This document shows, piece after piece, positions 24,760-48,405 of a DNA stretch of 64,000 nt. How positions within the stretch are numbered: the first letter of the stretch is position 1; every line of letters starts with the position of its first letter. Both the position numbers and the translations under genes were made by a program. This DNA comes from Prasinococcaceae sp. CCMP 1430 (taxonomy: Eukaryota; Plantae; Prasinodermophyta), in the NCBI GenBank assembly GCA_013416795.1, contig RQSC01000026.1, positions 269 through 64,268 of the forward strand, read 5' to 3'. The notes under the pieces were generated by a model, which did not search any database, had not been told where the DNA came from, and saw only the letters and a list, made by a program, of their open reading frames with translations.

Positions 24760-27041
24760 GCGCGGCGGCGCCCGTCGCCGCCCCGGTCGCGCCCGGCGTG
24801 GCGCCCGGCATGGCGCCCGGCATGGCGCCCGGCGCCGTGCCGTACGGCCTGGAGGACATCCGCGACAAGAAGCGCGTGCCGCTGCCCACCACCGACGGCA
24901 CGGGCATCTACGGCTTCGACGACGCGCTGGGCGGGCACCACGGCCACCTGGGCTACCGCTGGGACCAGTACAAGCGGATGCGCTACGCCATCGAGGAGAA
25001 CGAGGGCGGCCTGGAGAAGTTCTCGCGCGGCTACGAGATCTACGGCTTCACCGAGACGGACGAGGGCATCTGGTACCGCGAGTGGGCGCCCGGCGCGCAC
25101 TCCGCCTCGCTCATCGGCGACTTCAACGGCTGGAACGCCGGCTCGGACCCCATGACCAAGAACGAGTTCGGCACCTTCGAGGTCTTCCTGCCCAACAACG
25201 CCGACGGCACCCGCGCCATCCCGCACGGCTCCAAGGTGAAGATCCACCTCCTGACCGCGAGCGGCGAGTGGCAGGACCGCATCCCGGCGTGGATCAAGTT
25301 CGCCACGCAGGACCCCGGCGCCATCCCCTTCGACGGCATCTACTACAGCCCGCCCGAGGAGGAGCGCTACAAGTTCAAGCACGCGCGCCCGCGCAAGCCG
25401 GAGAACCTGCGCATCTACGAGGCGCACGTGGGCATGTCGTCGGAGCACCCGGTCATCAACTCGTACGTCGACTTCCGCGACAACGTGCTGCCGCGCATCA
25501 AGAAGCTGGGCTACAACGCCGTGCAGCTCATGGCCATCCAGGAGCACGCGTTCTACGGCTCGTTCGGCTACCACGTGACCAACTTCTTCGCGTGCTCGAG
25601 CCGCTGCGGCACGCCCGACGAGCTGAAGAGCATGGTCGACCGCGCGCACGAGCTCGGCCTGCACATGATCGTCGACATCGTGCACTCGCACGCCTCGAAC
25701 AACGTCAACGACGGCATCAACATGTTCGACGGCACCGAGGGCCAGTACTTCCGCGAGGGACCGCAGGGCTACCACTGGATGTGGGACAGCCGCTGCTTCA
25801 ACTACGGCTCGTGGGAGGTCATGCGCTTCCTGCTCTCGAACGTGCGCTGGTGGGTGGAGGAGTACAAGTTCGACGGCTTCCGCTTCGACGGCGTGACCTC
25901 GATGATGTACGACCACCACGGCCTGAGCGTGGCGTTCACCGGCGACTACAACGAGTACTTCGGCATGGCCACCGACCAGGAGGCCATGGTGTACATGATG
26001 CTCGTCAACGACATGCTGCACAACCTGTACGACTTCACCACCACCATCGCCGAGGACGTGTCGGGCATGCCCGCGCTGTGCAGGCCCGTCCACGAGGGAG
26101 GCACGGGCTTCGACTACCGCATGAACATGGCGGTGGCCGACCTGTGGCAGGACCTCTTCAAGGACGCCGTGCCCGACGAGAACTGGGGCATGGGCCACAT
26201 CACCTTCACCATGACCAACACGCGGTGGGGCGAGAAGACCGTCGGCTACGCCGAGTGCCACGACCAGGCCCTCGTGGGCGACAAGACCATCGCCTTCTGG
26301 CTCATGGACAAGGACATGTACGACTACATGTCCTCGCTGAGCCCCGCGAGCGACACCGTCAACCGCGGCATCGCGCTACACAAGATGATCCGCCTGCTGA
26401 CGTTCTCGCTCGCCGGCGAGGGCTACCTCAGCTTCATGGGCAACGAGTTCGGCCACCCCGAGTGGATTGACTTCCCTCGCGCGGACCGCGAGGAGCGCGG
26501 CAAGTTCATCCCTGGCAACGGCGGCTCTCTGCACCACTGCCGCAGGCGCTGGGACCTCGCGGACGCCGACCATCTGCGCTACCACTACCTGATGGACTTC
26601 GACCGCAAGATGATGCACCTCGACATCGCCTACGGCTTCATCAAGCACGGCCACAACTACATCTCGCGCAAGGACGAGGGCGACAAGATGATCGTGTTCG
26701 AGAAGGGCGACCTGGTGTTCGTCTTCAACTTCCACCCGTACCACTCGTACGCCGACTACCGCGTGGGGTGCAACGAGGGCGGCAAGTTCCTGTGCGTGAT
26801 GAGCTCGGACCTGCCGACCAGCGGCGGCTGGAACAACCTGCACGAGGGCACCGAGCACTTCGCCGACATGATGCAGCACGACAACAGGCCCGCGAGCTTC
26901 CAGTGCTACGCGCCTGCGCGCACGGTGGCGGTGTATGCGCCCGCGCGCTTGGTGGAGGAGGGGATTGCGCCGGCGTGGTGGTACGACGACTGGGAGCCCA
27001 CGCTCGCGCACGCGGACCCGAACCCGCAGTACCTCCAGTAA
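24760..27041 (+). CDS. SBE: Starch branching enzyme (GH13, SBEII-like), intronless; true transit-peptide start probably missing
   Basis: YREWAPGA (CBM48 region), [86 protein letters not shown]; TGTAA at 27250. Confidence 0.97.
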
Positions 27042-28648: not shown

Positions 28649-30051
28649 CTAGGCGCCCACCTCTCGCCCGGTCGCGTTGTCGCCGATCTTTATCCAGCGC
28701 TCGGTCTCGGGCCTTGACGCGCCCACGACCATGGGCGCGCCGGTCCCCTCGAGGACCGCCACGTCGTACAGCTCGTGGATGGCGCCACCAACGACGACTG
28801 CATGCGCGGGCTTGCCTGTGCGCAAGTCAACCACGTAGACGCCGCAGCGAGGCTCCGCCTTGCGGCGCTCGAGCTCCTGGCCAAGGGGCAGGTCCGAGAA
28901 CACGGAGTATCTTGGCATGGAAAGGCCGACGACTGCGAAGGCCCCCGACGGAGAGAAGCGCAGCCCACGCGCGAAGCCTGGGAGCCACGCGTGGCGGACG
29001 AAGGCCTCCTCGGGCGTCGCGGCGTCCATGTTGACCCATCCAAGCCAGCCAGTGCCGGCCTCGAGGAGCCAAAGCTTCCCCTCGTGCATCCGCGGCGAGT
29101 GAGGCATGCTGAGCCCCGCACACACAACCGTGTTCGTCCGGCAGTCCCATACCTGTCCTCCACCCGCTCTGTGCTGTCGCCAGCCGTCTTTCTCGTCGGC
29201 TGGCCCGACGACGGTAGCATATGCGAGCTTCGTGGGGTCAGCAGGGTCCATGCAGAAGCCGTTGAGGTGGCAGCAGTCCTCGGCGCGCACGGCGGTGAGG
29301 AAAGGTGGCATCCACACGGGCGAAAGCGAGCCGCTCGCCGGGTCGAGCTGTGCCACGCAGTTGAGCGCCGTGCACGCGGCCAGCACGCGACCATCCGGTG
29401 TCTCGACCAGCTCGTGGGCGTCAACGCGGCCAGTGAAGTGCGCCTCGCGCGGTGCCAGCACACGGTCCCAGCGCGCGCCGCGCGCGTCGGCGAAGGGACC
29501 GCCGCTCTCGCGCAGTGCGTTTGCCAGACGGTACGCCGCTGCCGCCGTCGATATCCGCAAGTCGCCAGACGCCGTCGGTGACAGCGCCATGGCCTTGTCG
29601 AAAGAGCACTGGCTGATCGAGGGGCCCGAGCCACCGCCCAGCCCGGGACCAACCAGGAACACCTTGCCGTACGTGTAAGTGGAGAAGCCAAGCGACACGT
29701 CCTCGGCGCGCATCCATGCTGCGAGGCCTGCCGAGAGGCTTACCTGCGAGGTCGCGACGGGCGGGCGGCGCGCGGGAGGTCAGCGGCTGCCTGGACGGAG
29801 TTGCACGCTAGCTCAGTGCGCGCATGCACCATCCGAGAGAGAAAGAGAGAGAGAGATGGCGCATTTGAGGAGTCGACAGGAGGAGGAAGAGGACGCGGAG
29901 CGCGCACCTTTGCTTGCTGCGCGGACGCAGCAGACCCCTCCGCGCCAGGGAGCGGCCGGTCACTCGAGACGGCCGGCGCGCCCTTCAGACGGGGCGGCGA
30001 CGCGCCTCCGGGGGATACCTCGGCGGAGGCGCGCCCAGGCAGCGCGCCCAT
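28649..30051 (-). CDS. TIGR03032 / DUF4915 family protein (bacterial-type, beta-propeller-like); exons ~30051-29908 and 29743-28649; start may lie further upstream in the gap
   Basis: LAAWM..EDVSLGFSTY, FTGRVDAHEL, WMPPFL..V.AEDCCHLNG, DGWRQHRAGGG, GLSMPHSPR, GKLWLLEAGTG, PGFARGL, VVGLSMPR, ELYDVAVL follow the family pattern in order. Phase-0 intron 29744-29907 (GTGCGC..GCTGAC..CGCAG). Confidence 0.88.
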
Positions 30052-30821
30052 GGCCACAGCCGCCGCCGCCGCAGCAGCAGCTGCGGCGCTGAGCGCGCAG
30101 CGGGCGCCCTCCCCGCTCCCTCCATCCCCCCCCCGGCCGCCCCGCTGCCGCNNNNNNNNNNNNNNNNNNNNNNNNNNNNNNNNNNNNNNNNNNNNNNNNN
30201 NNNNNNNNNNNNNNNNNNNNNNNNNNNNNNNNNNNNNNNNNNNNNNNNNNNNNNNNNNNNNNNNNNNNNNNNNNNNNNNNNNNNNNNNNNNNNNNNNNNN
30301 NNNNNNNNNNNNNNNNNNNNNNNNNNNNNNNNNNNNNNNNNNNNNNNNNNNNNNNNNNNNNNNNNNNNNNNNNNNNNNNNNNNNNNNNNNNNNNNNNNNN
30401 NNNNNNNNNNNNNNNNNNNNNNNNNNNNNNNNNNNNNNNNNNNNNNNNNNNNNNNNNNNNNNNNNNNNNNNNNNNNNNNNNNNNNNNNNNNNNNNNNNNN
30501 NNNNNNNNNNNNNNNNNNNNNNNNNNNNNNNNNNNNNNNNNNNNNNNNNNNNNNNNNNNNNNNNNNNNNNNNNNNNNNNNNNNNNNNNNNNNNNNNNNNN
30601 NNNNNNNNNNNNNNNNNNNNNNNNNNNNNNNNNNNNNNNNNNNNNNNNNNNNNNNNNNNNNNNNNNNNNNNNNNNNNNNNNNNNNNNNNNNNNNNNNNNN
30701 NNNNNNNNNNNNNNNNNNNNNNNNNNNNNNNNNNNNNNNNNNNNNNNNNNNNNNNNNNNNNNNNNNNNNNNNNNNNNNNNNNNNNNNNNNNNNNNNNNNN
30801 NNNNNNNNNNNNNNNNNNNNN

Positions 30822-31215
30822 GTCCTTGCACTTCTCCTTGGAAGAGTTCCACTTGCAGGCGCTCTCCGCATTGCACGTGCTCTTCTTGCTGAAGGTCGAG
30901 CAGTCCACTGCCTCCTCCTCCACTTCGTCCTCCTCCCGGTCCTTGCACTTCTCCTTGGAAGAGTTCCACTTGCAGGCGCTCTCCGCATTGCACGTGCTCT
31001 TCTTGCTGAAGGTCGAGCAGTCCACTGCCTCCTCCTCCACTTCGTCGTCCTCCTTGTCCTTGCATGACTTGGAGCTCCACTTGCAGGCGCTCTCCGCATT
31101 GCACGTGCTCTTCTTGCTCAGGGTCGAACAGTCTGTCTTGCACGTGGACGTGGAGTCGCTCCATTCGCACGCGCTCTCCGCATTGCACTTCTTTTTCTTG
31201 CCAAATGTCCTGCAG
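30822..31215 (-). repeat. 117-nt (39-aa) tandem repeat CSTFSKKSTCNAESACKWNSSKEKCKD plus acidic linker, running into the N gap
   Basis: Near-identical units start at 30822 and 30939; two more diverged units precede them in the protein. Confidence 0.92.
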
Positions 31216-34200
31216 AGTTCCTCGAGCGATTGTGGCGGCGGGCTCGGCGGTGGGCTCGGCGGCGGGCTCGGCGGCGGGCTCGGCGGCAGGCTCGGCGGCG
31301 GGCTCGGCGGCGGGCTCGGCGGCGGGCTCGGCGGTAGCGGTGGGCTAGGCGGTGGACTCGGCGGCGCGCTCGGCGGCGGGCTGGGTGGGGGGCTTGGCGG
31401 CGCGCTTGGCGGCGGGCTCGGTGGCATGCTCGGAGGCGGCGGGGGTGGCGGGCTGGGTGGCGGCGGTGGGCTGGGCGCTATGGGCGCGGTAGGATAGTGC
31501 TTGAGCTCACGCCGACAGCAGCGGATGCGCGCCACGTTCGACCAGTCGGTCGCGCCAACATTGCTGGGCGCTACGAAAATGCCCGTCATGGTCCACTCAG
31601 CGGGGCACACATACACGAGGCTCGATGCCGCAAGGCCAACACCCGATAGGCCGGACTCGGCGACCTCGTGGTCCTCGCACGCGACGTCGACCTTGAGGGT
31701 GCTGGCGTTGTACTTGGGAATTCCGCAGAAGGCGCCTGTAAGACAGGCCAGATGCTCGCTCGCGGGGTCGCACTCGTCCGCCGTGGCAGGGACAAGGGCG
31801 CGCAGCGCCTGACCAGGAGGGCACGTAAACCAACTCGGCTGAAGCGCGTTGATGGCGCCCTTGATATTCCATTCTGCATACGTGATGTCATAGGTGATCG
31901 GCGCGGACCTGAGCTCTGTCATGTCCTCCAGACCGTCCATCACGTCTTCTCCTTCCGGGATGGTGGCAGTGCAGCACTTGATGGATGCCAGGTCGGAGAA
32001 GTCTGCCGAGCGTGCTGTGAAGCCGCGGATGGCGTCGTTTAGCTCGGGGCAGGAGACGTACTTGTGCATGAATGGCTCGGGGAGGGTGCGATCTTCGCAT
32101 TCGGTGAAGCTCGTGTCGCATCGGATCCCCTCAGGTCCTTCGACGGAGACGGCACAGCAGCGCCACTCCACGATGAGCTCCGAGGCTGTCGATCGCGTCG
32201 AGAGCGACGAGATTGCGCTGCCAGCATCGCAGGTGACCAACGCCTGGGCCATCGACGCGAAAGTTGCACTGGCCTCCTGGCATTCAGGTGCGAAAGCCCA
32301 GTTCCAGTCGTCGACGATGTTCCCCCCACACGATCGCGCGACCGCGCATGCGACGCGAGACGTGAATTCGCCCTCAGCACACTCGGCCGCCGAGCTGACG
32401 CTTGTCATCTCAGACTGCAGCGAGCGCCGTGCGCCCACGGGCGCGCCGGTGACCTCACAGCAGCGGAACTTTTCGATGCAGTACAGGTCGTTGCACGCAC
32501 TGCGATACAGGCCAGTCATGACGGAGTCGCCAGGGCATGTGTGAGTGCCCGCGCTGTCGAAGGCGACGGTGACGTCGTGATCGAAGCACGATGAGGTCGT
32601 CACACCCGAGGGTAGACGCCCGCACTGCAAGCTTTCCACACAGTAGATTTCGTCGCAGTCCCCGCGGTACATGCCCATCAGCACGGTGTCCGCAGGGCAG
32701 AGCGCCCAGTTTTCCGAGTCGAAGAGCGTCGCAATATCCGTCTGCTCAGTCGCGAGCCGAATCGCCTCGCCTCCAGCGGTCAGCGAGCGGCACTGCATGG
32801 CCTCGATGTTGTAAAGCCTCCCCGGGCCGCTCTCGCTGCGTTCCAGACCCGCCAAGGCAGCATTGTCACAAGCACCCCAGCCCGCCTTGTCGAAGGAGAG
32901 CGATATATCGAGCCGCTGGGCGGCCTCCAAGGACGCCGACGCGAGGGCGCCGCCAGAGTCGCCCGAGGCGCCGCCAGTCAGCGCGCCCGAGTCGGCCAGC
33001 GAGCCCGCCCACACGCCGGCGAGGTACTCTCCTCCAAGGCACGAGGAGTCAGTGAAGCCACCTCTGGGGTACTGCGACGCTGGGCTGGCGCACCCGCCGA
33101 CCTCTGCGTAGCGCGCCTGAGCCTGCACGTCGGCGCCGCCGGCCCGCACGCCACCGACCTTGACGCAACCGATCATCAACTTGTAGGAGCCGCTCTGCGA
33201 GCATGCATCGCTCACACCGATGACATGACCCATGACATGTCCCTCCGGACACTCAATGCCCCACGCCTGGCCGTCCCTGATGCACGCCGTGGTGAGCCAC
33301 TGTGGCGTAGTGAGGTCGTCAAAGTAGGTGTCAGGCGTGGGCTCGATCGGCAGCGGCTCAACGGGGGGTTCTACCACGTCGCTACGGAGCCCCCCACCGT
33401 TGAGAAGGTCCAACGACCAGCTCTCGCCCCCGTGCTCGCCGTTGCCATCGAGGTACAGCTTCTTGCCTTCCATTTCGGGCGCACTCGCGCAAAAGGAAAC
33501 CGAAAGGTCGAGCAGTGACTTCGGACCGATCGTGATGGCGTCCTCGAGGCCCGTCATGATAACGTCGAGTAGCGTCGCACTGTTCTGTGCCATACGCCCC
33601 ACGGCGCCGGCCAGCGCATCGGCCGGGTTGCCCAAGGCGCCTATCACGTCGATGCCGAAGGGGCAGACGGGGAAGTGATTTTTCGCGATCCGCGCCAACG
33701 GCGACATGAACTCTTTCGCTTGCTGCAAGTTCTCGTTCGCCTCGAGTTCACCCACGAACTTGGGCTTGGGCGCCTTGTCCAACAACGCCTGCATCTTCTG
33801 CTTGACGGTCGCGCCCACTTTGTCGAGACTGTCTGCAACGACGCCAGACCACTTGATCCCCAGGACAATCGTCGCCTCCAACGAGATGTACGCCCCAGCC
33901 CTGATTGTCGTCGTTTCGCCGCTGTCGTCGCAGCTGCCGATGACGATGGGCTCCTCATACATGTTGCCAGCGGCGGTGGGAAATCCTTTCTGCAGCTCGG
34001 TTTGCTTGCCCACCGATACGTCGGCGCCGATCGCAAACTTGGTGTTCAATGCGAATTGCGGCCCGAGGCACTCTGTGAGAATGCAGATGGCAACGCTGCC
34101 GCTGACCTGGATGGCCGCCGAGAACTGCGCCGAGACCTGGGCAGAGGGCAGCACGGGGCCCGTGACATGCGCTCGCCCGCCCGTGATCACCCCCGTCAGC

Positions 34201-37200
34201 AGGTCGAAGTCCATCCAGAGGCCGTCGAGCGGCACTCGCATGGCAAGTTCGTCGATGTTCAGCTTCACTTGCGCGAGCAGCTCAGTCACGTCGAACGAAA
34301 ACGCCGCGGCAAAGCCCAGCCACGCCAACGGCGGGAACGGGATGTTCCACTGAAGGTGCGCGTTCAGGGGCAGCTGATCGGCCAGATGTGCGAGCAGGTC
34401 CCACGTTCGCAAGTAGCTGACGCCGCCGCCGAGCAGAGACAGCTGGGGCAGCACCTCCACGCGCGTCTTCAGCTTCGTGACCTTGATTAGATCCATCAAG
34501 CCGCCAACGTCGTCCTTCAGCGAACGATCCATTCGGCGGCGGCGCTCCTGCGGCAGGTGCTCGGCCAGCTCATCATTGGCGAGCGCCCGTAGCGCGTCGG
34601 CGACGTCTGGGCGCACGTCGAGCAGCCCGCGCCCACCGCTGAGAAGCCTGCGGCCTTCGGAGGAGTTCAGGTCACTGAAGTCAAAAGACGCCAGCTTGTC
34701 GTAAAGCTTTTGGATGAGTGGCGCAGATGACAGAAAGTCGCGCATGCTCTCGCGCAGTGCGCTCAGATCAAGCTCGAACTCCTTGAGCTGAAAGCAAATG
34801 GGGAGATCGAGCTCGATCGTGACGTCGTCGTAATCAAACGCGCGCTCGCTTTTGTCCTCATAAACCTCCTCGCCCTCTTCGTTCTCATAGCTATAGTAGT
34901 CATCCGCATCCATCAGCCTGCGGCGCGCAGCCTCGCTTGCCCACGGAGCGCGCGGCGCCGCGGAGCCGCTCTCGCGCGTCCAGCGCTTCACATACTGGCC
35001 GAAGGTGTGGCGCATGGCCGCCAGGAGCTTGCTCATCTGCGGGTACGTGACGCGGTACTTTGCAGTCACCGCCTCGACAGTTGCCCGCTCCTGGTTGCGA
35101 CTCCCGACGCGCTTGCCGAGCGCGCTGCACGTCGCTCCCGTCTGGTTGAAAGGCGCTTTGCGGCCGTTCGGCGCGCAGTCAACATCGCCACCGCCATCGT
35201 AGGACAGCGTGCGATGCAGCTCGCGCGCACCGAACACGCCCACGCGCTTAAAGGGCGCTATGTGTCCGCCTGCCGTGTCCAGGACGGGAAGCGGGATCAT
35301 TTGGTGGATGCGCGCAGCGATCTCGGTGCCGAGCATGCGACGCCCGCGGCCGCCGCTGCAGGGTTCGCCCTCGCGAAGCGTCGCGTTTAGCTCCGCGCCG
35401 GCGCTCGCGTTTGCGACCGCGCCAACGAGGGAGTTGACCCACCCGTGGAGCGTGACGAGCTCGTCATTCACTGCTGCGGTGGGCACGAAGCGGCGATTGT
35501 ACGCAGCGCATGGCTCTGAGTGGCCGCCCTCCTCACCCACGGCGTCGCTGTCGACGCAGTCCCACACGACGCGCTGCAGAGGCTTGTGCGCGCCGTGGTT
35601 GACGCTATTGAGGTACTTGCCAGACCAGGTCACCTCGCCGCAACCGGCGAGCTCGTCGCCATTGAAGTAAACGTACTCCGGTGTGAGCGCGCGCACGAGG
35701 GCAGCCCAGTCGACGCCCTTGGCGTACGCCCACGCGGCGGAGACGCACTCTTCGCTGCCGTCGCCGCCGGGGCAGGGTTCGTCAAGAAACGCGCGTGTTG
35801 CATACGCAGCCTCGTAGATGGCGGCTGCCCGCGTGGGACTCGTGCTCCAGCCCCCCACGGAGGCGGCAGCCACGGCCCACTCGAGCGTAGGCGCCAGGTC
35901 GTCGGCGAGCAGTGCCCACTCCGCAACGAACTCGTGCGGCTCGGGCACGAAGTGCGAGAAGCCGCGGTTGATCAATGTGGAGCCTTGCACGTCTCGCACG
36001 GACGAGAAATTGCGCGCGAGACGCGGGCGGTGGTCGTCGCCGGGCTGCGAGAGCATGCGGCGGCCCAGACCCTGGGCCCCGAGGTCGAACGATATCACGG
36101 CGTTGTCTTCGCGGCTGCACTGAAAGAGGCAGAAGTTGGTGAGCGCGCGCGCGAGGTTTTCCGTGATCTTCGTCCGGATGACTTCAAGTCCGGGCAGCAT
36201 CTCGTCCAAGATCCAATCCTTTATCATTTCTTTGATCTCGTCGATCGAGATGCCGAAGATTCCCAGCAGCCCGTCCGCCACGTCCTCAATCTTCTCGACG
36301 ACGAATTCTACCACATCCCCCACGACATTCAGAATCATGTCGCCGGCATTAGCGGCAGCCTGGCACATGTCGTCGAACGTGTCGCTCAGCGGCTGAGTAG
36401 CGACGGTAACCACCTTGTCCGCGACCTTCTTACCCAAGTTTGCGGCCTTCTTAGCAAACAGCAGCTGCCTTTTGGAGCTGCCGCCCAGCGCGTTACCCGA
36501 GAAGGCCTGAGGGTCGACTTCGATCAACTCTTCGATTGAGGCAATGTAAGCGTCGACGTTTGCAACGTCTTCGATCACTATCGTGTCTGTGAACTGCGGC
36601 ACGGGCGCGCCGCCGGTGCCGTACACGCCCATCATGACCACGCGGGGCGCGAGCTGCGAGGTGGTGCTAAACGTGACCACCGACGCCCAGTACGTTGCGT
36701 TGAGTTCTGGCCTCTCGATGACGTCGCGCCTCGTCTGAACCACCTGCAGCTTCATCTCCTCCCCTGTTTCGTCCAGAGTGATGGTGATGTGCTTCAGCTC
36801 GGCCAACTGCTCCGTGCCCCACGCCGTGATGGTCGCGGCGTTGTAGGATTCTGAGTAGGTCACACTTTCAGTCTCGAGGGTGCCACCGCTCGACGGATCA
36901 ATCATCAGGTCGACGACGCCGTCATCGGCGCCACCATCAGCTCCTGCCAGTTCGAGTAGCAGCCGCGACGCGCCTTCGCCGCCCGGCCCTGCCGCGGCGG
37001 CGCTCTCGACAGTCGGCGCGCCAAGGGTGGTGATGTGAGGGTTGCCGACGGCCACGGGGGTGGCACCGTCGAAGCGCGCCGTCACAGCGCCGTCCTCACT
37101 GATGTCCACTTCCTTGGTGAGCTCGGCAACGGTGAAGGACATCGCGAAGATCATGACCAGGATGATGACAAGCGAAGTCCCAAGGAGCACCGCCAGCATC

Positions 37201-37955
37201 CGCAGCAGCTTGAACTGTCGTTGCGCCGTCTCGTAGGCGGCGACCATCGCCACCACCTCCGCGGGCACGATTTCGCCGCTGCCGTCGTGGTCGAGCTGCG
37301 CGAACATCTGCTGGGCCTTGGCGGGCAAGTGCGTCAGGTGTGCGAGCTTCACCACCCCCCCAGCACTGCTGACGCTCCGGGGCAGGTACGAGGCAGGCGC
37401 GGGACTGCCGCCGGAAGCGCCGTCGGCGCCGCTGTCGGCACCAGTGTCGGCGCCGCTGTTGGCGCCGCTGTCGGCGCCCGTGTCGGCGCCGGTGTCGGCG
37501 CCGCTGTCGGCGCCCGTGTCGGCGCCGGTGTCGGCGCCCCTGTCGGCACCAGTGTCGGCGCCGCTGTTGGCACCCGTCTCGTCGCCGCTGTCGGCGCCGG
37601 TGTTGGCGCCGCTGTCGGCGCCGTTTTCGGGTTCTGGATCGTCGACCACGAGCGCAATGTCGCCGGCATTGACATCGTTGCCAGAGCCGCCGGCATCTTC
37701 ACCGGCGCTTCCCTCGTCTTTCTCCAGGCGACGCCTCGTGAGCGCGCGCATGAGCCGCCCTGCGCTGCTCACCACAGGACCGACTACAGGGATGCCCACG
37801 CGTGGGGAACCCCGGGCGGGCGTCCCGTTTGCGCTCCCGATGCGTGGAGAGCCCCGTGCGGGCGTCCCGCTGGCGCTGCCCTCGCGGGAACGACCCCGCG
37901 CAGGGGTCCCATGGCCGCCGCCGTCGCCTCCGTCCCCCTCCGCCGCACCCCCCAT
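30822..37955 (-). CDS. Giant protein A (at least ~2380 aa; 3' end in the gap): EF-hand, single TM helix, very large Cys-rich exterior with repeated modules, Pro-rich linker, C-terminal Cys repeats
   Basis: Uninterrupted ORF from the ATG at 37955. EF loop DHDGSGEIVPAE; hydrophobic LAVLLGTSLVIILVMIFAMSFTV; repeats SFDxxGWxxC...GLYR...LYxIExxxCC; (PPSP)n; 39-aa Cys repeats. Confidence 0.9.
31232..31480 (-). repeat. Pro/Ser-rich (PPSP)n coding repeat, extensin/pherophorin-like linker
   Basis: GGCGGCGGGCTC-type 12-mers on the + strand. Confidence 0.9.
37411..37625 (-). repeat. 12-nt coding tandem repeat (GAD[T/S])n in the cytosolic N-terminus of giant protein A
   Basis: About 17 units of GTCGGCGCC(G/C)(C/G)T-like sequence. 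Confidence 0.9.
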
Positions 37956-39368
37956 CGCCGCTGCGGCGCTCGCGCTCGCGCCCGCGCGCGCGTCTTGGGG
38001 TCGGGACCCTGCTTGCCGCCCTCCTGCAGCAGGCCCATGACCATCTCCCCCCCAAGTCCCCCCACCACCACCACCTGCGCGTTCGCGCGTCCTCGCCCCC
38101 GACTAAATATCGTTCATCCGACCCAACTACCGTTACCATCGCGCGCCGCAGGACCCTGCCACCCGCGGCCGCTGCCGCGGGCCCGCCCGGCCCGGCCGGA
38201 TGAGCGGCGCGCCCAAGCTCGCGGCGCAACCTGGCCAGCCAGCCCAACCATGATGATGTCGCCAGCCAGCCAGCCATCCAGCCAGCCGGCCACCTAGCTA
38301 GCTAGCGCCCACCCACCCACCCACCCGCCGGCCGGAAGGGCGTGGCTACGCGCCTTGCTTGGTCGTCTGTGTTGGTTGGGATGGGCGCCGGCCAGCGGGT
38401 GCGCGCGTGTGCCGAGCGCATGCGCCTGTGTCCTGCCTGTAGTCTACGCGGCCGGTATCGATGCCCGACCGAACGGCAAGCAGCGCGCGCGCGTGCTCGC
38501 GGCCTCGGTCGGTCGGCCGCGGCTCCAAGAGAGCACGCGTGCGGATCTTTTCCCCCCGGCGCGCCGGCGCGGCGCGGCGACACGTCGCCGCCCGGCCGCG
38601 TGTGCTCATCTCGCTCACGCCCGCCGCGCGGCCACGCGCGCGCGTCGTCGGCCGGGGGGGGTAGTTATCCATCCCCCGCGGCGGCGCGCGCGCGCGCTCG
38701 GGGAACGCCCCACATCAAAACGCATTGAATTTCCCCCGCGCCCAACGCCCTGGGCGGTTTCGGTTGCCGTTACGGCCCCGGCGGAGGCGCGCGAAAAAAA
38801 AACACAGGTCAAAAGCAACGTCACGTCTGCAATGGCAAAAAATCTTTTTAAAAAAATCGGCAGAGCGGAGAGCCATCGGCCAGAGAGATCAGACAGCAGC
38901 CAGGCAGGCGAGCCCGACCGACGGACGGTGGCGACGGGGCGAGCGGGTGCTGCCTCTGCCTGCAGTGCATGCATGCCCGCCTGCCTGCCCGCCTGCCCGT
39001 GGGAGCCAACCGAGGGGGGGAAACGCGAGGTCCGCGCGTCGGCCGGGGCGTTCCCCCGCGCGGCCGGCGGAGTTGCGCTGGGTTTTGCCCCCGAGGCGCG
39101 GCGGCGGCGCGCGCGCCGCCGGCCGGGGGGCGCGCATGGCCAAACCGGTGCGGTGGGGGCGAGAGCCAGGGTGGGTGGGTTGAGTTGGGGGGGAGGTGGC
39201 AGGGGGTTGCCACACGCCGCTGCGGGGCGGCGCGGTGGCGACGCGGCGGTGGCCGCGGTCGCAGCCCCACCGCCCCCGCGCCCCCTTTTCTTGGCCTATC
39301 CTCCCCCCCAACCACCACACCCCAACACAAGCACACGGGTGGCAGGTGGCGCCGTTCGTCGGCGCGGC

Positions 39369-42300
39369 ATGGGGAACGCGAAGGACATGACGAGCGATGA
39401 GGGCGAGACAGAGTTTATCCAGCTGAGCGAGCTTGCGAGCAAAGAGCTGGTCGAGGCTCTGTCCCCGCTCGATGTCAATGGCGACGGCTCGGTGAGCCTC
39501 GGCGAGATGGAGGCCGCGCTCGATGCGTACGAGCGCGCCCAGACCTCGTCGCGGCGGCTCACGCGCGCCGTCGCGGCGCTCGCTGCGCTGCTTGTGATCT
39601 TCGGCATGGTGTCCATGGGGCTGATGTGGGCGGCGATGGAGCTTGCCAAGGACGCGCGCGTCGGCGATGATGGAACCATGCGCGCGGGTGACTACGCGCT
39701 GAAGATGGAGTCGACGTCTATTAGCGTCGGCGCCAACGGCAGCGCCGGCGGGGGTGCAACGGCGGTGCGCGCGAAGCGCCCCGGTGGGACGGCCGTGGCC
39801 ACCCGCACGGCGCCCTCGCGCGCCGTGCCGCTCGAAGGCGGCCTGCCGCAGCTGTTGCACGAGCCGAAGGAGGCGCTCGTGCTCTTCGACAGCATCGACG
39901 TTTCACTCAACGGCACGCTCTTGCGGCTCGAGGTGCTCTCCGTGTCCGACCGGTTCTGGGGCACGCTGGACGGCCAGCCAGCGGGCGCCGCAGACGTGCA
40001 CGCCGCTGCCGCAGCTGCGAAGTTCTTCCCGGGCGAGCTCGGAGCCGTGCGAGGAACGCGCCGGGTGCTGATCGAGACAGGCAGCGCTGCGGTGCCGCTG
40101 GTGCTCGTGCAGGGCACCTTCGACGCGGCACCGGGCGAGGGCTTCGCCGCCGGGAGGCCCTTCGGGCTGATTGCCCTGCTGCTCGAGCCGGCCGAGGCGG
40201 CGCGCGCTCTCGCTGCCTCCCCGGAGGCCGGCGACACGCTCGACGCATCCACGTACTCGCCACCACTCGTGTCGCCGTACGTGCCCACCAGCGTGGATCT
40301 GGTGACGCGTGGCAAGCACGTGGCGGTGCCACCGGAGGGGGGCGCCGCCGCTGCCGCCGTGGAGCGCCACCGCCGCCTGCAGTCCGAGCGCCACCGCCGC
40401 CTGCAGATGGCTGGCGGCACGGACGACCGAGTCGCCAGCGCCGGGGGGCGCGAGCTTGACGGTGTGTCCGAGTGGCTGGAAGGCATCTTTAAGGGCCTCG
40501 TTAACAAGCTGCTCGACGTATTCGTCCCCGACCTAGATGCCCTCAAGGAGACCGCAACGGCCACACTCAAGAGCATGCTCCCTCGTGTGTGCCTGAAGGA
40601 CATGTACTGCGAAAAGGGCGTCGTGGGTAACAACCTCGACGCCGGCGACGAGTCCGTCGCGCAAGAGTACGAGCCGGCCTTCGAGTGCACCCCGGAGCTG
40701 ACAGATGAGGAGGGCCTTTATTGCGAGGAACTCAACGATCCGAACGCGCAGTATTCTCCAAAGCACCAGGAGGAGGGAGCGATCAAAGTCCACAGGTGCG
40801 ACCACGTCGTACTGCCGGAGGATGTGGCCGACAAGTGCCCCGAGCACCAGGCGCTCATGGACGCTTGGGAAGCGGGTGTCAACACTCCCAGCCAGTCCGA
40901 GATCGGCGAGGCGCGCAGGAAGTGCCTGCTGGAGCACGGCAGAACTGATGACAGGGTCTGGGGCAGGTGCCCGCGATCATGCTGCGACTGGCAAGAGGCG
41001 AGTGGGGCGACGTTTCGGCCGCCGCCTCCGCCGTACACGACTCCGCCCCCGCCCTCGCCTCCGCCGCCGCCCATTGGGGTCGCAGATGACGGCCTGCCCT
41101 TCGTGCTCGAGGCCCAGGGCGGGCTGGACACCTCGACGGGCATCATCAACACCTTCGTGCCTATCATGAGGCGCGTCTTGAGTGAGCTTGAGCGGCTCAA
41201 ATCCGTGAAGATAGGCGGGGAGCCTGCGCTGGACGTCTTCATGGCCCGCTGGCCCAAGCTGGCCGAATTCACCGACTACGAGCAGTTCTCGGAGGAGTAT
41301 GAGGTCACGTTCGACCTTGTCGAGGACATCATTCCGTTGTATCTCTGGACAGGCGACACCTACGGAGCAGTTATAATACCGGACGCCCCGGGGATGTCGT
41401 ACGGCGAGGTGTGGCTGACCAACCGTTCGGACATCAACAGCCCGCTCAGGAGCCAGCAGCGGCGCACCAAGCTTTCGTATTGGAGGTCGGACTACATTTA
41501 CGAGAGCGTGAATGGCGAAGCGCGCACGCCGCTGAGCATGTGCGAGGACAGGTACACGACGAGCGAAGACTGGAGAGAGGGTGCGAGTGCGAGCGGATGC
41601 GAAACGCTCAGCCACGCGCAGATGCGTGAGGCGATGCCTGGCTACCCATATCCGTACGGGAGCTACGATGAGGACCCCCTCGTGTCGCGCACGGGCATGG
41701 GCGACGACCAGATCGAGCAGCTGCTCACGCAGCTCGAGGACTTTGCTCAGTTCCAGTCCATGATGAAAAAGACGAGCACGGACACTGCCGGGCGTGGCGT
41801 CACTCGGTACGACCAGTTCTACCGCGACAATTGCATCTACCCCGACCAAGCGGCGCTGCTGCGGTCGACTGACCCCGACGTCGAGAGGATCTTCAGGGCG
41901 TCGCGCTCCGTGGCGTGCGAGCGCCTGCTGAAGGGGGAACTCGACACGATCGAGGTGGCCAGGTGGTACTTCGACGAAGAGGACAACCCCTTCCGCAATG
42001 CCAACCCCCCCTCGATGGATGCGCACCTCGACGACGGACAGTATCAACCTAAGGAGCCGCTCGGGCGGCAGCGAGAGCAGACGGAGGACCAGCAAGGCAA
42101 CGCCTTTCATCCGGACTACTGGACGCCGAGGAACGCCGACAAGGTTGGCAAAGTGTACAAGCATCATGACCGGTTCTGGGCTACGCCTTACGCAGAAAGA
42201 GAGTCGTGGACTGCCGGCGAGCAGGGGGCGCGGTACACAGGCGAGCTCGCGCCCGGCTGTCCCGTTGAGCTGTACCGCATCGAGGGCTGCGTCCCGAAGC

Positions 42301-45300
42301 GCCGATACTCGATCGTCAGTGACATCAAAAAGTCCGATGCGCAGGGATCCGTGCCGGAGGGCCGCTCGAGCTGGCAGGAATGGGCCGAATTCTTCGCCGC
42401 CGACGTGCGCAAGCAGGCACGCATGGCTTATCTCCTCGCGAAAGCCCCCTCCATTTTGGAGAGTTTTCCTCGCGCTCTGCGAAGAGCAGACGGAGGGGGT
42501 GGAGGGCTGCATCGATCCAGCAACGAAGGAGAGCGTGCCGTGCAGCTGGGGGGACGAGGCCGGGTCGGGTGCGTTCACGTGCATCGAGGCCATCCGCGAC
42601 ATCGAGGATCGCATGCCCTGGCCGCTCCTCCTCGATGTGCTCACCCCCGCATACGTGTTCGAGGCTGGCGACAGGAGCATCCTCACGGAGATACCCCTGC
42701 CGAATTTCATCGGGGAGGGCCAAAAGTTCATGGACTTTACCAAGCGATTTACGCCCGAGCAGAAGGACCTGGTGCAGTACAAGTGGTCCGGCGAGTCCCT
42801 GAACACGGTCAAGGGCGTCTCGGGGGTGAAAGAGAGCCTCACGTTCGACGACGCGGTAGCGCTGGAGGAGGGTCGGAGGGTCCCGCTCGCCGACAACTTG
42901 ATGGTCGAGCCCGACTCGAACTTCTGGCGCATCAAGCTCCTGGGCCGCTCGCTCACGTTTGCGCGCCTCGCGGACGAGCCATACCGCGCCAACCCGTCCA
43001 CGATGGTGGCCACGCTCATGCCCACGATGATCAACACGATTCCAAAGCCGTCGGGGCGGTTCACCCAGCCGCTCGCGGACGCGGCCGAGTGGTTCTCCGC
43101 AAGCAACGAGCCCGTCTCCATCGAGGCGGACATCCAAAAGCAGGGCTCCAAGTTTTGCAAGCCCTACCAACTTCTCGGCGGAAGGAGTATTTACGGCGAC
43201 TTTTACATGCACGGGCCTTGGGTCGAGCCAGACCGTCACCACCCCAGGTACAACAGATTTTTCAAGACGTTGTACGAGCGCGGCCGCAACATCGACGGCT
43301 ACTGGGACTTGTGGTCGGAGTACGAGGACAGCCCCGCCGAGGAGGCGAAGCGGCGCGGCATTCCGTGCGAGGGCAGTTGCAAAAAAAATGCTGATTTGTT
43401 TGAGGACGAAGAGGAAAATGACTTGATCCACGGCTCGGCAGCATGGCGAGTCTACGCGCGCGACACGGGCTACTCGGGGTGTACCCCCGTTGACTACGAC
43501 GACATTAAAGACTTGGAAACCCTGGAAGAAAAAGCCAAAGAGGACTTCTGGGCGAGAGCCTTCGACGGGGTGACGACGGGTGCGCTCGCTGTGGTCACCG
43601 GTCCCTTCGGGCCCGCGGCAAAGAAGGCCATAGAGTTGGCGGACCAGGTCGCACAGGCGACTTACGACAATTCGCTCTACTTGAGCGCATTAGGCGATCT
43701 GAGGTACAACTCCACTGCGGAAGAAGCCAAGGTGGGAGCTAACATGGTGGCCCTCTTTACGCCGGCTGGCTGGACGTTCCAGAAGGGCCTCTCCGAGGGC
43801 GCCAAGGGTGAGTGTCTGCACAAGCAGCTGCCGTACTCGAGACACTACCGAGATTGGATACTCCGAGCCGTGGACCCGGAAGAGGGCGCCACCCAGCAGA
43901 GTGTCGGGGACGACCTTTTTTACCCACTCAGCAAAAAGTCGGGCCCCCACGGCGAGAGGGCACAGCCAAAATTCAATCCTGGAACGAAGCACAATGCGGG
44001 GGTGACTATGTTCAAGTGCAACATAGGGTACCTCGAGAGCGTCAGTGGAGGCGACCTGGCCCACCCGCTGAAGTATCTGGTGCATAATTACGGCCACCCC
44101 AACGCCAAGGCAAACAACTTGGGTGAATCGGGCGAAGAGACGACGTGCCACACGCGGATGAGCAACCACGAGGCCACTAGCCAGGGTCTGATCATCTTGA
44201 AGGGATGGGAAGGGCCGTTCGCGGGCTCGGCCCTAACGGGTGCCATGGAAGGGGGGATGGTGCTCAAGGGGGCTCGTAAAGTTGCGCAGTACGCGACAGG
44301 TGCGATCAAGAGGGATGAGCGTCCCCACTTTGAGTGCCTGCACATGTTTAAGGATGCCATCCCCGCCAAAGGACACCCGCACTACAAAAACTGGGACGAG
44401 TGGTCGAGGTTCACGGGCAACACGCGGACCGAGCCCGAGCATCACCTCGACCCCAATGATCACGTGGACCCCGTGATGGGTGCCGGGAAGACGAGGTATC
44501 GCATCCCCCTCAGCGTGACCGCTGACGGCGGCGGCGTCGCGCTGTGGAAGGTCAAGCTGAACGAAAGGGTCACCGTCGACTGGTACGGGAGCCCGGTCGC
44601 GCCTGCCAGGAAGTTCCACCAAGCGCGGCAGGAGCAGCTCCAAAAGCTGTACACCAAATACGGGTGGCCCACCGAGGCGGACGAATGCATCGCGTTTGAG
44701 GATGGCTTCCAGCTGTCGGACCTGCCTGAATTCATTCCGTGCATGGTGAGGACAGTCCTTGCCTTTACGAGGAAGCTGCGGGAGAGGATGATGGAAGGCA
44801 TCATGGACGCGGTCTCTGCCGCGGCGAACGCGCCCATCGAGCCTGGCCAATGGGCCATCGAGGCCCGTGCCGGCGCCCTTTTTATGGAGCTGTGCGAGCA
44901 GTTCGGCTTTGACGCGCTCTGCGCGGCAGCGAGGCTGCTTGGCTCTGGCCTTCTCTCCGTCATCAAGGCCTTCGGCATACGGGCCGATTTCGACGTGTGC
45001 CTGGGCGTGCCCGAGGACGAGGTGGAGATCGACGTATCCAACCTGATGGAAACGCTGTCAGACTGGGTGACCTCGAGCGAGTTCGGCTCTGCGGTGTCCG
45101 AGGCTCTCGAGAATCTGCGCGATTGGGCCACCAGCCGGCGCTCGCTCACCGCGTCGGCCGCCGGCGCGTCGGGTGTCGCGCTCGGGTACGAGGACGACGT
45201 CCACGCGGAGGCCAGGCGACACCTCTCGGAGCACCTGGGGAGTCACCTGCGCCAGCGCGCACTGCTCGAGTACGATGACGGCGCAGGCCTTGTGCAGATC

Positions 45301-48300
45301 AAACGCTTTCCGGTGCGACTCGAGGTGATGTCCGAGTTCGCCATCACCTTCGATAGCCCCTTTCCGGAGGAATACGAGCAGGAGTGGGACGTGCTCCGGG
45401 TCGCCCTCGGGGATGACTTTGCCAGCTCCTTCCCTTTTCAGGCTGAGGGCGGCATGCCCATCGGCACCAGCGGCTTGCTCTCGGTCGCCTACGACGTGGA
45501 GGTCGACATCGAGGTCACGGCGAAGCTCAAGGCGACGTCGGCCATGAAGGGGGACGTGATATCCTTCAAGCTCCGTGACATGTACGTGGAGCTCGATTTG
45601 GCGTCTGGCGATATCAACATCGGCAGCCCCTACATTGACACGAGCAGGGGCTCCTTCTCGGCGGACATCAGCGGCGTCTTTGAGATCATAGCGAGCGCCA
45701 GGGGAGGCGTGAAGGTCTGCGTGCTGAACGACAACTGCATGGGCCCCCGGATGTCATTCTCGGGGCACGCCTCGGCCGGCTTCGACGTGCGCGTCGGCAC
45801 CGACGAAGAGGGCGAGGCGCCGATCGCGCGTCTCTCGCGCAGCTTCGACGGCGACAACGAGTACATCAACGCGGGCATCGGCTGCCACGTGCCTCACAAC
45901 GCCGCCATGGGCTTCTGGGCACAATCGACGGTGGCCGCTGAGCTTGGGCTCACCTTTGAGGTCATGGAGCTGATGATGGCGTGCCCCTCAGACCGCGACG
46001 CCGCCGTGGAGACGACCGGCGTGCCGATTGCGTCCATCGGCCCGGCGCGCCTGTTCAACGTCGACGCGAGCGCGTGTCTCCCCAAGGTTGGCGCGCCCGG
46101 CTTCGTCGGCAAGCGCCTGGGGCTCAAAAAGTACAACCCCGACTTTCCGGTGCTGCCGCTGCGCGGGTCGACGTACGCTGACTGGGGCCTGTCCTTCGAC
46201 ACAGCGGGATGGTCCACGTGCGCGGCGAGCGGGGTGATGAGCGAGGTGCATGACGGCGCCACCGTGGCGATCACCGCCCTCACCCGCAGCGCGTCCGAGT
46301 CCGGCGGGGAGCTCTACAACATCGAAGGCGTGTCGTGCGCGCCCTTCTTCGTTGAAAGGGACGAGTACGCCGAGTACGACTGCATCAACCACGATGTGAG
46401 CAGCTCCCTCGACTCGGCCGGGTGGGCCCAGTGCCCCGACGGTCGCTACTTGAACGGGCTCTACCGCAGCGCATCGAATGGCCTGAACGCCATCGAGGAG
46501 CTTCGATGCTGCGGCCACAAGCACAAGTACTCACGCGGCCTGGGGAGCTGCCAGAACATCGACGTGACCCCGTCCTTCTTCGGAGGCTACAAGGGCTTCA
46601 GTGACGCCGGCACCGTCACTTGCCCTGAGGGGAAGGCCCTCGTGGGCTTCTACCGCGGCTTCGTCTGGTTCGCCCAGCCGGGAACGCTGTCGAACATCGA
46701 GACGCTCCGCTGCTGCAACATCCTGGGGGACGGCGGCGACGAGTTGAAAAAGGTGAACGTCTCTTCGGAGTACTTCTATGCGGACTGGGGGCTTTCGTTC
46801 GACGCGGAGGGCTGGTCTACGTGCGAGGCCGCCGGGATGGATCGGCCGTTGGCTTCGATGGCAATGGCTGGGCTCACACGCAGCGGTGACCCCAATCGCC
46901 TCTTGAATCTCGAGGGGGCGCCGTGCCGTCCGCTGCAGCTGTCCTTCGAGGCTGTCGAGGGCGCCTACGACTGCGTTGAGCTGAACATCGAGCAGTCCTT
47001 CAACGACGCCGGCTGGGCGTTGTGCCCCTACGGCCGCTACATGAGCGGCCTCTACCGCGGCGGTGGCGGCGACACGCTGGACAATTTGGATGCGGTGTCG
47101 TGCTGCGGCGCGACGGACGCGCTCGATCGCGCGTGGGGCGAGTGCGTGGATGTGGACATCTCCGTGACGTTCGACAGCGCGGGCACCGTCGAGTGCCCCT
47201 CCGGCACCGTGCTTACGGGCATGGAGCGCAGCCACGCGGGCAACGGCGGCGACCTGTACCACATCGAGCGGCTGCGCTGCTGTGAAGTTCTCACCCCTGC
47301 GGCCGATCACATCGCCGCCCTGCCGCCGCTCGCTCTCAGCATTCCCAAGCCCAGCGGCTGGGACTTCAGTGGCGAGGGCTGGCAGCGGTGCGAGGTCGAC
47401 GGCGCGGATGTCAACTCGACGGTGATGATGACCGGGCTCTCGAGAGGCGATGGCGATGGCCTCCAGAGCCTCTCGGCGACGTGCGCCCGCTCCTGGGTCG
47501 GATCCGAGTATGAGTGCGTCGAGGTGGACATCGAGCAGTCCTTCAACGACGCCGGCTGGGCGCTGTGCCCCCACGGCCGCTACATGAGCGGCCTCTACCG
47601 CGGTGGCGGCGGCGACACGCTGGACAATTTGGATGCGGTGTCGTGCTGCGGCGCGACGGACGCGCTCGATCGCGCGTGGGGCGAGTGCGTGGATGTGGAC
47701 ATCTCCGTGACGTTCGACAGCGCGGGCACCGTCGAGTGCCCCTCCGGCACCGTGCTTACGGGCATGGAGCGCAGCCACGCGGGCGACGGTGGGCGCCTGA
47801 TCCACATCGAGACGCTCAAGTGCTGCGCCATCGCAAGCGCCGGCGCCCTGTTTGCGCCGCCGTCTCCGCCGTCCCCCCCGCCCCCGCCGAGCCCCCCGCC
47901 CAGTCCCCCGCCACCGGAAGTGGTCCCGGACCTGAACGGAGCACCGTCCTGGACGTGCCCTGCTGGCACCCGCCTCACAGAGATATCGGTCGTCAAGGGC
48001 TGGTACGTCGACGGCTTCACGGAGCTCAAGTGCAGCGACGGCAGTACGTTGCCCACCACGGTGCCCGGCTACATCACGAACCCCCACAAGTCTCCGTGCA
48101 CGATAACCCTCTCGAGCACCACACTCGAGGTGCAGTACCAGCCGCGTGACTGGCCGCGATTCCTGAACCAGGTCGGCACCTGCGTCCAGGAGCGCGGCAG
48201 CTACTACGACTACGGCCCCAAGCGCCTGCTCTCGTGCAGGTCGAGCAACAACCACTTCGTCGGCATCGCCGCCGTCGAGTTGGGCACCCCGAGCACGTGG

Positions 48301-48405
48301 CCCCCGAGCTGGGGCTACCCGTCGTTCCTTCAGGACTTCGTGCTCGTCTGCAAGGACGGCACGCCCGCCACGGTGATCGGCGGCGACGACTACTACTACT
48401 ACTAG
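39369..48405 (+). CDS. Giant protein B (~3010 aa if one +1 frameshift near 42464-42467 is corrected); paralog of A
   Basis: ATG at 39369; EF loop DVNGDGSVSLGE; TM AVAALAALLVIFGMVSMGLMWAAM. The ORFs 38355..43394 and 41998..48405 overlap, and similarity to A continues across the frame change. Nine SFD/G-W-C..LYR..IE..CC repeats, a Pro-rich linker and a C-terminal module follow. Confidence 0.85.
46988..47825 (+). repeat. Near-identical ~300-nt intragenic duplication (period 543 nt) in giant protein B
   Basis: ATCGAGCAGTCCTTCAACGACGCCGGCTGGGCG at 46988 and 47531; the following ~95 codons are almost identical. Confidence 0.95.

Follow-up and report, generated by a model that had tools for sequence, protein, structure and literature searches.

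The DNA analyzed here is a stretch of 64,000 nucleotides (the window) from contig RQSC01000026.1 of the draft genome assembly GCA_013416795.1 of the marine green alga Prasinococcaceae sp. CCMP 1430. Two very large genes, designated A and B, lie head to head in the window and diverge from a spacer of about 1.4 kb (Table 1), in agreement with an earlier note made from the sequence by eye. That note had also described both genes as giant and without evident introns. For gene A this description holds, since a single open reading frame (ORF) of at least 2378 codons is visible, with a GC content of 0.63, 0.52 and 0.80 at codon positions 1, 2 and 3. The 3' end of gene A, and with it the C terminus of the protein, is lost because the ORF runs into a run of N. 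Gene B, in contrast, is not the one ORF of about 3010 codons that had been proposed but is divided between two reading frames. Each predicted protein consists of an N-terminal tail, which is short or of low complexity, an EF-hand loop, a transmembrane helix and a cysteine-rich part of more than 2000 residues.

Table 1. Features of genes A and B and of the DNA between and beside them (positions in the window; residues are those of the predicted proteins; P0001 to P0006 are environmental protein fragments)
Feature	Position	Strand	Basis or remark
Run of 670 N truncating the 3' end of gene A	30152..30821	.	117-nt tandem repeats adjoin the gap
Gene A, visible coding part	30822..37955	-	Single ORF, 2378 codons, ATG at 37955
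A, 39-residue Cys repeats	30822..31229	-	117-nt period; adjoin the N run
A, (PPSP)n linker, 87 residues	31233..31493	-	Composition, tandem repeats
A, further degenerate Cys-rich units, residues 1838-2150	31506..32444	-	Marginal matches to the unit hidden Markov model (HMM) only
A, Cys-unit triplet, units of ~50 residues, residues 1680-1834	32454..32918	-	3 unit-HMM matches, independent E value (iE) 2e-20 to 4e-25
A, beta-rich domain, residues 1047-1480	33516..34817	-	BLASTP against B; aligned with P0003, P0004, P0006
A, LTPxYV cysteine module, residues 691-830	35466..35885	-	Smith-Waterman against B; P0005 match
A, helical stretch common to B, residues 540-612	36120..36338	-	Similarity to B; kept in P0001 and P0002
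A, sole predicted transmembrane helix, about residues 252-278	37122..37202	-	Hydropathy peak 2.81, the only one in A
A, near-canonical EF-hand loop, residues 222-233	37257..37292	-	PS00018 scan
A, low-complexity acidic tail, predicted cytosolic, Gly/Ala/Asp/Thr-rich, residues 1-200	37356..37955	-	12- and 36-nt tandem repeats
Spacer between the start codons, 1413 bp, ~72% GC	37956..39368	.	No convincing gene or RNA
Gene B, overall	39369..48405	+	ATG at 39369, stop at 48403-48405; two frames
Gene B, first frame, about 1032 codons	39369..42465	+	GC at codon positions 1/2/3 0.66/0.48/0.83
B, EF-hand loop, residues 35-46	39471..39506	+	Matches PROSITE PS00018
B, sole predicted transmembrane helix	39564..39638	+	Hydropathy
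B, helical stretch similar to A residues 530-612	40431..40598	+	z 5.3, 0/2000 shuffles
Gene B, reading-frame break interval, shift to +1 frame	42440..42480	+	ORF change and codon-position GC
Gene B, second frame, 1979 codons and stop	42466..48405	+	GC at codon position 3 0.85
B, LTPxYV module	42466..42885	+	Smith-Waterman against A
B, beta-rich domain	44977..46065	+	BLASTP against A; environmental alignment
B, nine Cys units in three triplets	46177..47826	+	Unit-HMM iE 1e-14 to 1e-25
B, short PPSP linker, 22 residues	47851..47916	+	Composition
B, C-terminal module	47917..48402	+	No significant similarity to any part of A

Five blocks of similarity are common to A and B and follow the same order along both proteins, which bears out the shared domain order of the earlier note. 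The first block comprises the EF-hand loop, a helix, the transmembrane helix and an acidic juxtamembrane motif (A residues 193 to 293 and B residues 5 to 106) and was detected both by BLASTP (E = 2.6e-4) and by Smith-Waterman alignment (z = 13.6, 0/2000 shuffles). It is followed by the helical stretch, which aligns A residues 530 to 612 with B residues 345 to 410, and by a cysteine module with LTPxYV and WSGxxLN motifs, which aligns A residues 691 to 830 with residues 1 to 140 of the second frame of B (score of 68 versus 27.9 ± 4.9, 0/2000 shuffles). The beta-rich domain (A residues 1047 to 1320, B second frame 838 to 1115) and the cysteine units of about 50 residues (A residues 1676 to 1837, B second frame 1232 to 1421) were detected by BLASTP with E values of 5e-15 and 5e-17, respectively, and both had been listed as shared in the note. 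Thus, significant alignment of A with B is found in four blocks outside the repeats. The shared blocks are followed in both proteins by a PPSP-type linker and then by C-terminal modules that differ, as had been described.

Similarity between the two proteins was not significant in the juxtamembrane domains (z = 0.6), in the C-terminal modules or in the EWA stretch just 5' of the break in B. The module that had been read as running from EWA to LTP is therefore shared in its LTPxYV part and not in its EWA half. The identity between A and B is 25 to 33%, and B is longer than A by about 1000 residues between the shared blocks. No second paralogue (third copy) was found elsewhere within the window. 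On these alignments, A and B are best read as old inverted duplicates.

For gene B, both parts look like coding sequence, with GC contents at the third codon position (GC3) of 0.83 and 0.85 and strong codon periodicity. The phase of the codon-position GC switches between 42400 and 42520, an independent sign of the frame break. The break sits beside short homopolymer runs inside the shared LTPxYV module, and the window contains nine runs of N, as a draft assembly may, which makes an assembly error at this position plausible. The 1979 open and domain-bearing codons 3' of the break argue against an old decay of gene B; together with the codon periodicity and the conserved domains, they indicate that the break is either an assembly error or a real and very recent lesion. 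A short intron was also considered at this position and was rejected, since the sole GT...AG span of fitting phase is 22 nt, which is below the minimum size of a spliceosomal intron. A frame change was also seen in an environmental relative of A with 61% identity (contig L002 from the European Nucleotide Archive, positions 173 to 852, 57% GC), in which the tblastn pieces 173 to 634 and 628 to 852 lie in different frames. This change, at about A residue 675, does not coincide with the break in B and probably reflects noise in the assembly.

The spacer between the start codons does not resemble coding DNA. Its long ORF has a flat GC content of 0.76, 0.72 and 0.71 by codon position without codon periodicity, and the ORFs in the spacer are rich in Arg, Ala, Gly and Pro and noise-like. 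Rfam gave no match in the spacer, and no RNA genes were found between 27000 and 51000. No significant shared or symmetric element was detected in the spacer: the best inverted match, 22 of 26 bases, was reached in 17 of 100 simulations, and this candidate for a symmetric promoter element was rejected. The status of the pair as a system and its coregulation from a bidirectional promoter are conjecture.

Alternatively, the pair may be no system at all, A and B being diverged duplicates that lie head to head by chance in a compact genome, with B decaying and A alone, if either, a surface protein. The frame break in B, the lack of a significant shared spacer element and the A-B identity of only 25 to 33% are what this explanation would lead one to expect. 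It does not account well for the codons 3' of the break in B, which stay open with a GC3 of 0.85 and encode conserved domains, and the position of the break beside homopolymer runs in a gap-rich draft assembly offers another cause for it. The occurrence of a frame change elsewhere in a metagenomic relative likewise fits assembly noise in these GC-rich genes. We regard this explanation as unlikely, although it is a serious contender.

The GC content of the window is about 64 to 72% outside the runs of N, in line with the 69.8% reported for the Prasinoderma coloniale genome. The GC3 of A and B (0.80 to 0.85) is lower than that of a nearby starch-branching enzyme gene (0.99), as had been noted by eye, and equals that of two ordinary neighbors, a DUF4915 gene (0.82) and a DUF1995 gene (0.87). 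The codon bias of A and B is thus ordinary weak bias. It argues for modest expression and not for foreign origin, and an origin of the pair from a foreign source, considered on the basis of codon bias, was rejected.

About 18 residues separate the end of the EF-hand loop, which is 12 residues long, from the transmembrane helix in both proteins, and the two loops align with each other at this spacing. The loop of B matches PS00018, for which 0.025 chance matches were expected, whereas that of A fails this pattern only at loop position 9, which is Val. By this pattern, the loop that had been assigned as canonical in each protein fits in B and is near-canonical in A. With the Pfam EF-hand_6 profile, neither B (E = 0.033) nor A (E = 0.26) reached the 25-bit cutoff, and the only echo of an EF-hand in NCBIfam was XopAW, with 16.9 bits versus a cutoff of 120. 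Lone EF-hands normally work in pairs, and each protein has one loop on its predicted cytosolic side, so that no pairing within the chain is seen.

Each protein contains only one strongly hydrophobic segment (residues 248 to 281 in A and 63 to 92 in B), in agreement with the single transmembrane helix of the earlier note. This segment is flanked by three to four Arg or Lys residues on its N-terminal side and by four to five Asp or Glu residues on its C-terminal side. Cysteine is confined to the part beyond residue 500 in A (71 cysteines) and to that beyond residue 400 in B (74 cysteines). A signal peptide is absent, and the runs of Ser-Pro3-4 are located far on the C-terminal side of the transmembrane helix. 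The absence of a signal peptide, the charges of the flanks, the distribution of cysteine and the position of the PPSP linker fit the type II topology that had been proposed, in which the EF-hand is cytosolic and the large part is luminal or extracellular. This orientation is a prediction that is well founded on sequence logic.

The same overall plan is known from the teneurins, which are type II proteins of about 2800 residues with an intracellular N terminus carrying EF-hand-like motifs, one transmembrane helix and a huge cysteine-rich ectodomain (PMC4408839). A and B share with them the type II plan, as far as topology can be judged from charge and cysteine distribution, a giant ectodomain of more than 2000 residues and a likely proteolysis. 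By analogy, A and B could be receptors whose ectodomain serves in cell or gamete recognition and whose regulated cleavage frees the EF-hand tail for intracellular signaling. However, EGF, NHL, YD/Rhs (the YD-repeat shell of teneurins) and Tox-GHH domains were not found in A or B with Pfam and NCBIfam at E values up to 1, and no sequence homology to teneurins was detected. Moreover, the cytosolic tail of B has only about 60 residues and that of A is of low complexity, there is one EF-hand in A and B versus two in teneurins, and A and B come from a green alga whereas teneurins are animal proteins. A teneurin-like receptor function is therefore considered rather improbable.

The earlier note did not recognize the architecture as a named family, and the searches led to the same view. 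Nothing informative was found above threshold for A and B in Pfam at E values up to 1 to 5, and sequence and profile searches of NCBIfam and the PDB with blocks of A and B gave nothing above threshold. A PSI domain (PF01437) in the C-terminal repeats of A was below the cutoff (E = 0.023, 15.5 versus 23.1 bits). An exhaustive HMMER scan of A residues 400 to 1560 against 1.84 billion representative proteins gave only five matches, all of which are short products of marine metagenome assemblies. The closest, P0001 from a Tara Oceans surface sample of the 0.22- to 3-µm fraction, is 97% identical to A, and P0002 is 61% identical; the helical stretch is conserved in both. P0005 is 36% identical to A over the LTPxYV module, and two fragments are 25 to 30% identical over the beta-rich domain. 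P0005 is a 177-residue protein in which an unrelated N-terminal half is joined to the LTPxYV module; the coverage of its contig (L003) is 1.6, residues derived from an adaptor are present at the contig end, and it may be chimeric.

A Tara scaffold of 2.6 kb with 66% GC (L001) carries a homologous ORF (225 to 2027) that stops right after the beta-rich domain with a short proline-rich tail. Beyond this family member, a convergent ORF resembling ankyrin repeats is located at 2118 to 2603. The end of this member after the beta-rich domain suggests that the core of the family extends from the N terminus to the beta-rich domain and that the distal repeat arrays are variable; the cysteine-repeat arrays seem to lie outside the core. 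Judged from these alignments, the core is conserved in DNA of other marine picoeukaryotes (P0001 to P0006 and contigs L001 to L004). No matches were found in a word-indexed search of 5.8 billion proteins (A residues 200 to 1560, one triplet of B and B second frame 230 to 830), among viral contigs (three queries), among Joint Genome Institute metagenome contigs (two scans) or among the genomes of bacteria and archaea (two scans). There is thus no support for a recent origin of the pair from a virus or a bacterium. For the four shared blocks outside the repeats, no relative whose structure or function is known was detected.

The cysteine units are arranged in groups of three, and the unit HMM detected nine units in B and three clear units in A. 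Within a triplet, the first unit differs, while the second and third carry CPxG and end in CC. Cysteines are conserved at the C, CPxG and CC positions of the units in A and B, and an internal 3-fold repetition of cysteine-bearing units of this length, about 50 residues, is shared with dermatopontin. The Pfam DERM profile (PF14704) aligned at positions 44 to 135 of 152 with residues 1678 to 1772 of the second frame of B, covering two adjacent units (E = 6.1e-6), and single triplets gave an E value of 0.0059 at best. Both dermatopontin and B have domains of about 150 residues composed of three disulfide-bonded units, predicted as such in B, but dermatopontin is a small secreted protein whereas the domain is repeated three times within the roughly 3000 residues of B. 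A match of B to Pfam DUF5061 (24.2 bits versus a cutoff of 23.6) was rejected as spurious, being a partial match of 35 residues; it was seen twice because two units are near-identical.

An AlphaFold2 (AF2) model of one triplet was of medium confidence (predicted local distance difference test [pLDDT] of 64, predicted template modeling score of 0.66) and shows roughly four strands in each unit. A Foldseek search of the PDB with this model gave no match. When the model was aligned with 48,161 PDB representatives, only two chains had a Z score of at least 2, and both were Vip3 toxins (Z = 4.2 and 4.0 over 101 to 102 residues, with a root mean square deviation of 4.2 to 4.3 Å). Realignment of the top 604 Foldseek chains gave five entries, all of them Vip3, four of which matched at about residues 351 to 525 of their own numbering with Z scores of 3.6 to 4.3. 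This region falls inside domain III of Vip3Aa (residues 328 to 532), a beta-prism of three antiparallel sheets that resembles a Cry-toxin domain able to bind or recognize sugars (PMC7414852). None of the PDB searches brought up a dermatopontin structure. The best available reading of the model, rather than a result, is that the triplets may be beta-prism-like, dermatopontin-like binding modules. Among viral models (BFVD), the triplet gave weak matches (E = 0.016 to 0.08, probability of 0.33 to 0.87, TM score of 0.33 to 0.43), which include a phage "binding domain" protein, an Edafosvirus protein and the unnamed entry M4QMA7 and are too weak to interpret.

A 3-fold beta-rich unit, as in the triplets and in the beta-prism of Vip3 and Cry proteins, has also been described for biomphalysin's small lobe (domain I), for which prediction gives a disulfide-rich beta-prism containing three repeated patterns (PMC12186885); this likeness is by description. 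A and B might accordingly be membrane-tethered defense proteins that combine a lectin and a pore former, with the triplets aiming the protein and long hairpins of the beta-rich domain inserting into a target membrane after proteolytic release. In the AF2 model of the beta-rich domain, which is poor, several beta hairpins of at least 20 residues are seen, and RRxL sites could be activation sites. Nevertheless, the hairpin model has a pLDDT of 41 and is not trustworthy, and the conserved hairpin of the domain in A, with its C-x4-5-C spacing, has charged residues and a disulfide at the tip. No aerolysin, ETX/MTX2 or MACPF signal was found in Pfam or PDB profile searches, so that no counterpart to the aerolysin-type large lobe was detected in A and B, and the repeats follow the beta-rich domain, the reverse of the order in biomphalysin. 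We consider a pore-forming function highly improbable.

The R-[RK]-x-[LM] motifs lie between 32420 and 45270, in both genes. In A, nine motifs were found versus 0.9 expected, a tenfold enrichment, and this number was reached in 0 of 1000 shuffles. Conserved motifs of this kind lie toward the N-terminal end of the beta-rich domain of A, where one site can be aligned among A (RRLL), B (RRSL) and the environmental fragment P0004 (RKLM). RKLL, RRKL and RRLL serve as processing motifs in the pro-pectin-methylesterases of plants and have been linked to processing by subtilases, and the plant subtilase S1P processes the RALF precursor (bioRxiv 10.1101/2022.07.28.501549). With these precedents within the green lineage, cleavage of the A and B precursors by a subtilase of the S1P/SBT type is, by analogy, a reasonable hypothesis.

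Green-algal hydroxyproline-rich glycoproteins (HRGPs), such as the Chlamydomonas wall proteins and the sexual agglutinins, provide a second comparison. Extensin-like runs of Ser-Pro3-4 are present in A and B over the lengths of the linkers given in Table 1. As in the HRGPs, these runs stand between globular cysteine-rich modules of very large proteins with a presumed surface location. The HRGPs, however, are not known to have a counterpart to the N-terminal EF-hand and signal anchor of A and B or to the four shared blocks outside the repeats. In architecture, A and B thus appear most similar to a giant surface glycoprotein of the teneurin or HRGP type while belonging to neither, and the sole family-level link appears to be the sub-threshold dermatopontin-like repeat.

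Taken together, A and B are best explained as lineage-restricted giant type II membrane glycoproteins with a role in the wall, coat or matrix or in recognition, an explanation to which, as a whole, we assign a probability of about 0.5 on the sequence data. The N terminus with the EF-hand would face the cytosol, and the rest would be luminal or extracellular and disulfide bonded. The Ser-Pro runs would be O-glycosylated, as in the green-algal HRGPs, and the triplets would fold as 3-fold beta-prism-like modules holding carbohydrate or matrix ligands. A subtilase in the secretory pathway may cut the precursors at R-[RK]-x-[LM], and this cleavage would set the outer modules free to enter the coat of the cell or the matrix of the colony, while a calcium-sensing stub would stay behind. 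Pairing through the lone EF-hands might occur between A and B or between two copies of either protein. The most likely role would lie in wall, coat or matrix construction or adhesion, or in cell-cell recognition.

Several observations weigh against this explanation. For the beta-rich domain, the AF2 model from a five-sequence alignment was unusable (pLDDT of 41), which leaves the largest conserved block without an assigned fold. The evidence on the triplets is also open to question: the DERM match misses the gathering cutoff (27.0 versus 28.3 bits), the modeled triplet lacks the last seven residues of its third unit, and the Vip3 matches, with Z scores of about 4, are mutually consistent but weak and below the level at which the tool is reliable. 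The two parts of B contain three and two R-[RK]-x-[LM] motifs versus 0.8 expected in each, so that enrichment is not clear in B. Calcium binding by the EF-hand of A is uncertain, given the Val at loop position 9. Finally, B may be a pseudogene if the frame break is a real lesion, and a possibly broken member tempers the significance of the pair.

The genome paper on Prasinoderma coloniale reports that the composition of the thick wall is unknown and that no enzymes for cellulose, mannan or xylan synthesis were found, and calls for biochemical study of the wall (PMC7455551). A more specific version of the surface-glycoprotein explanation is that A and B give rise, as precursors, to the chief proteins of a cell wall or colony matrix of such unknown chemistry. 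Pairing of the EF-hands would then lead to calcium-controlled delivery, and S1P-type cleavage at RRxL would free lectin-like beta-prism and beta-rich modules, which would assemble in the extracellular space. This version is a long shot. If expressed, A and B represent a protein family so far seen only in a few marine picoeukaryotes, in which a putative calcium site in the cytosol would be coupled directly to an extracellular glycoprotein of giant size; outside the family, this plan is best known from the animal teneurins. Its study could also help to explain how the coat is built or sensed in an early-branching green alga.

Three other genes in the window were noted. An intronless starch-branching enzyme gene is located at 24798 to 27041 on the plus strand and encodes CBM48, alpha-amylase catalytic and C-terminal domains; with its extreme GC3, it is a convenient reference for strong codon bias within the window. 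The ORF adjoining gene A, at 28649 to 29713 on the minus strand, is matched along its entire length by Pfam DUF4915 (E = 1.3e-81). DUF4915 is mainly a bacterial domain, and this gene may have been acquired horizontally. At 61810 to 63888 on the minus strand, an ORF of 692 residues contains disordered repeats of the Pfam PT family (E = 1.5e-14) and possibly encodes another surface protein rich in proline and threonine.

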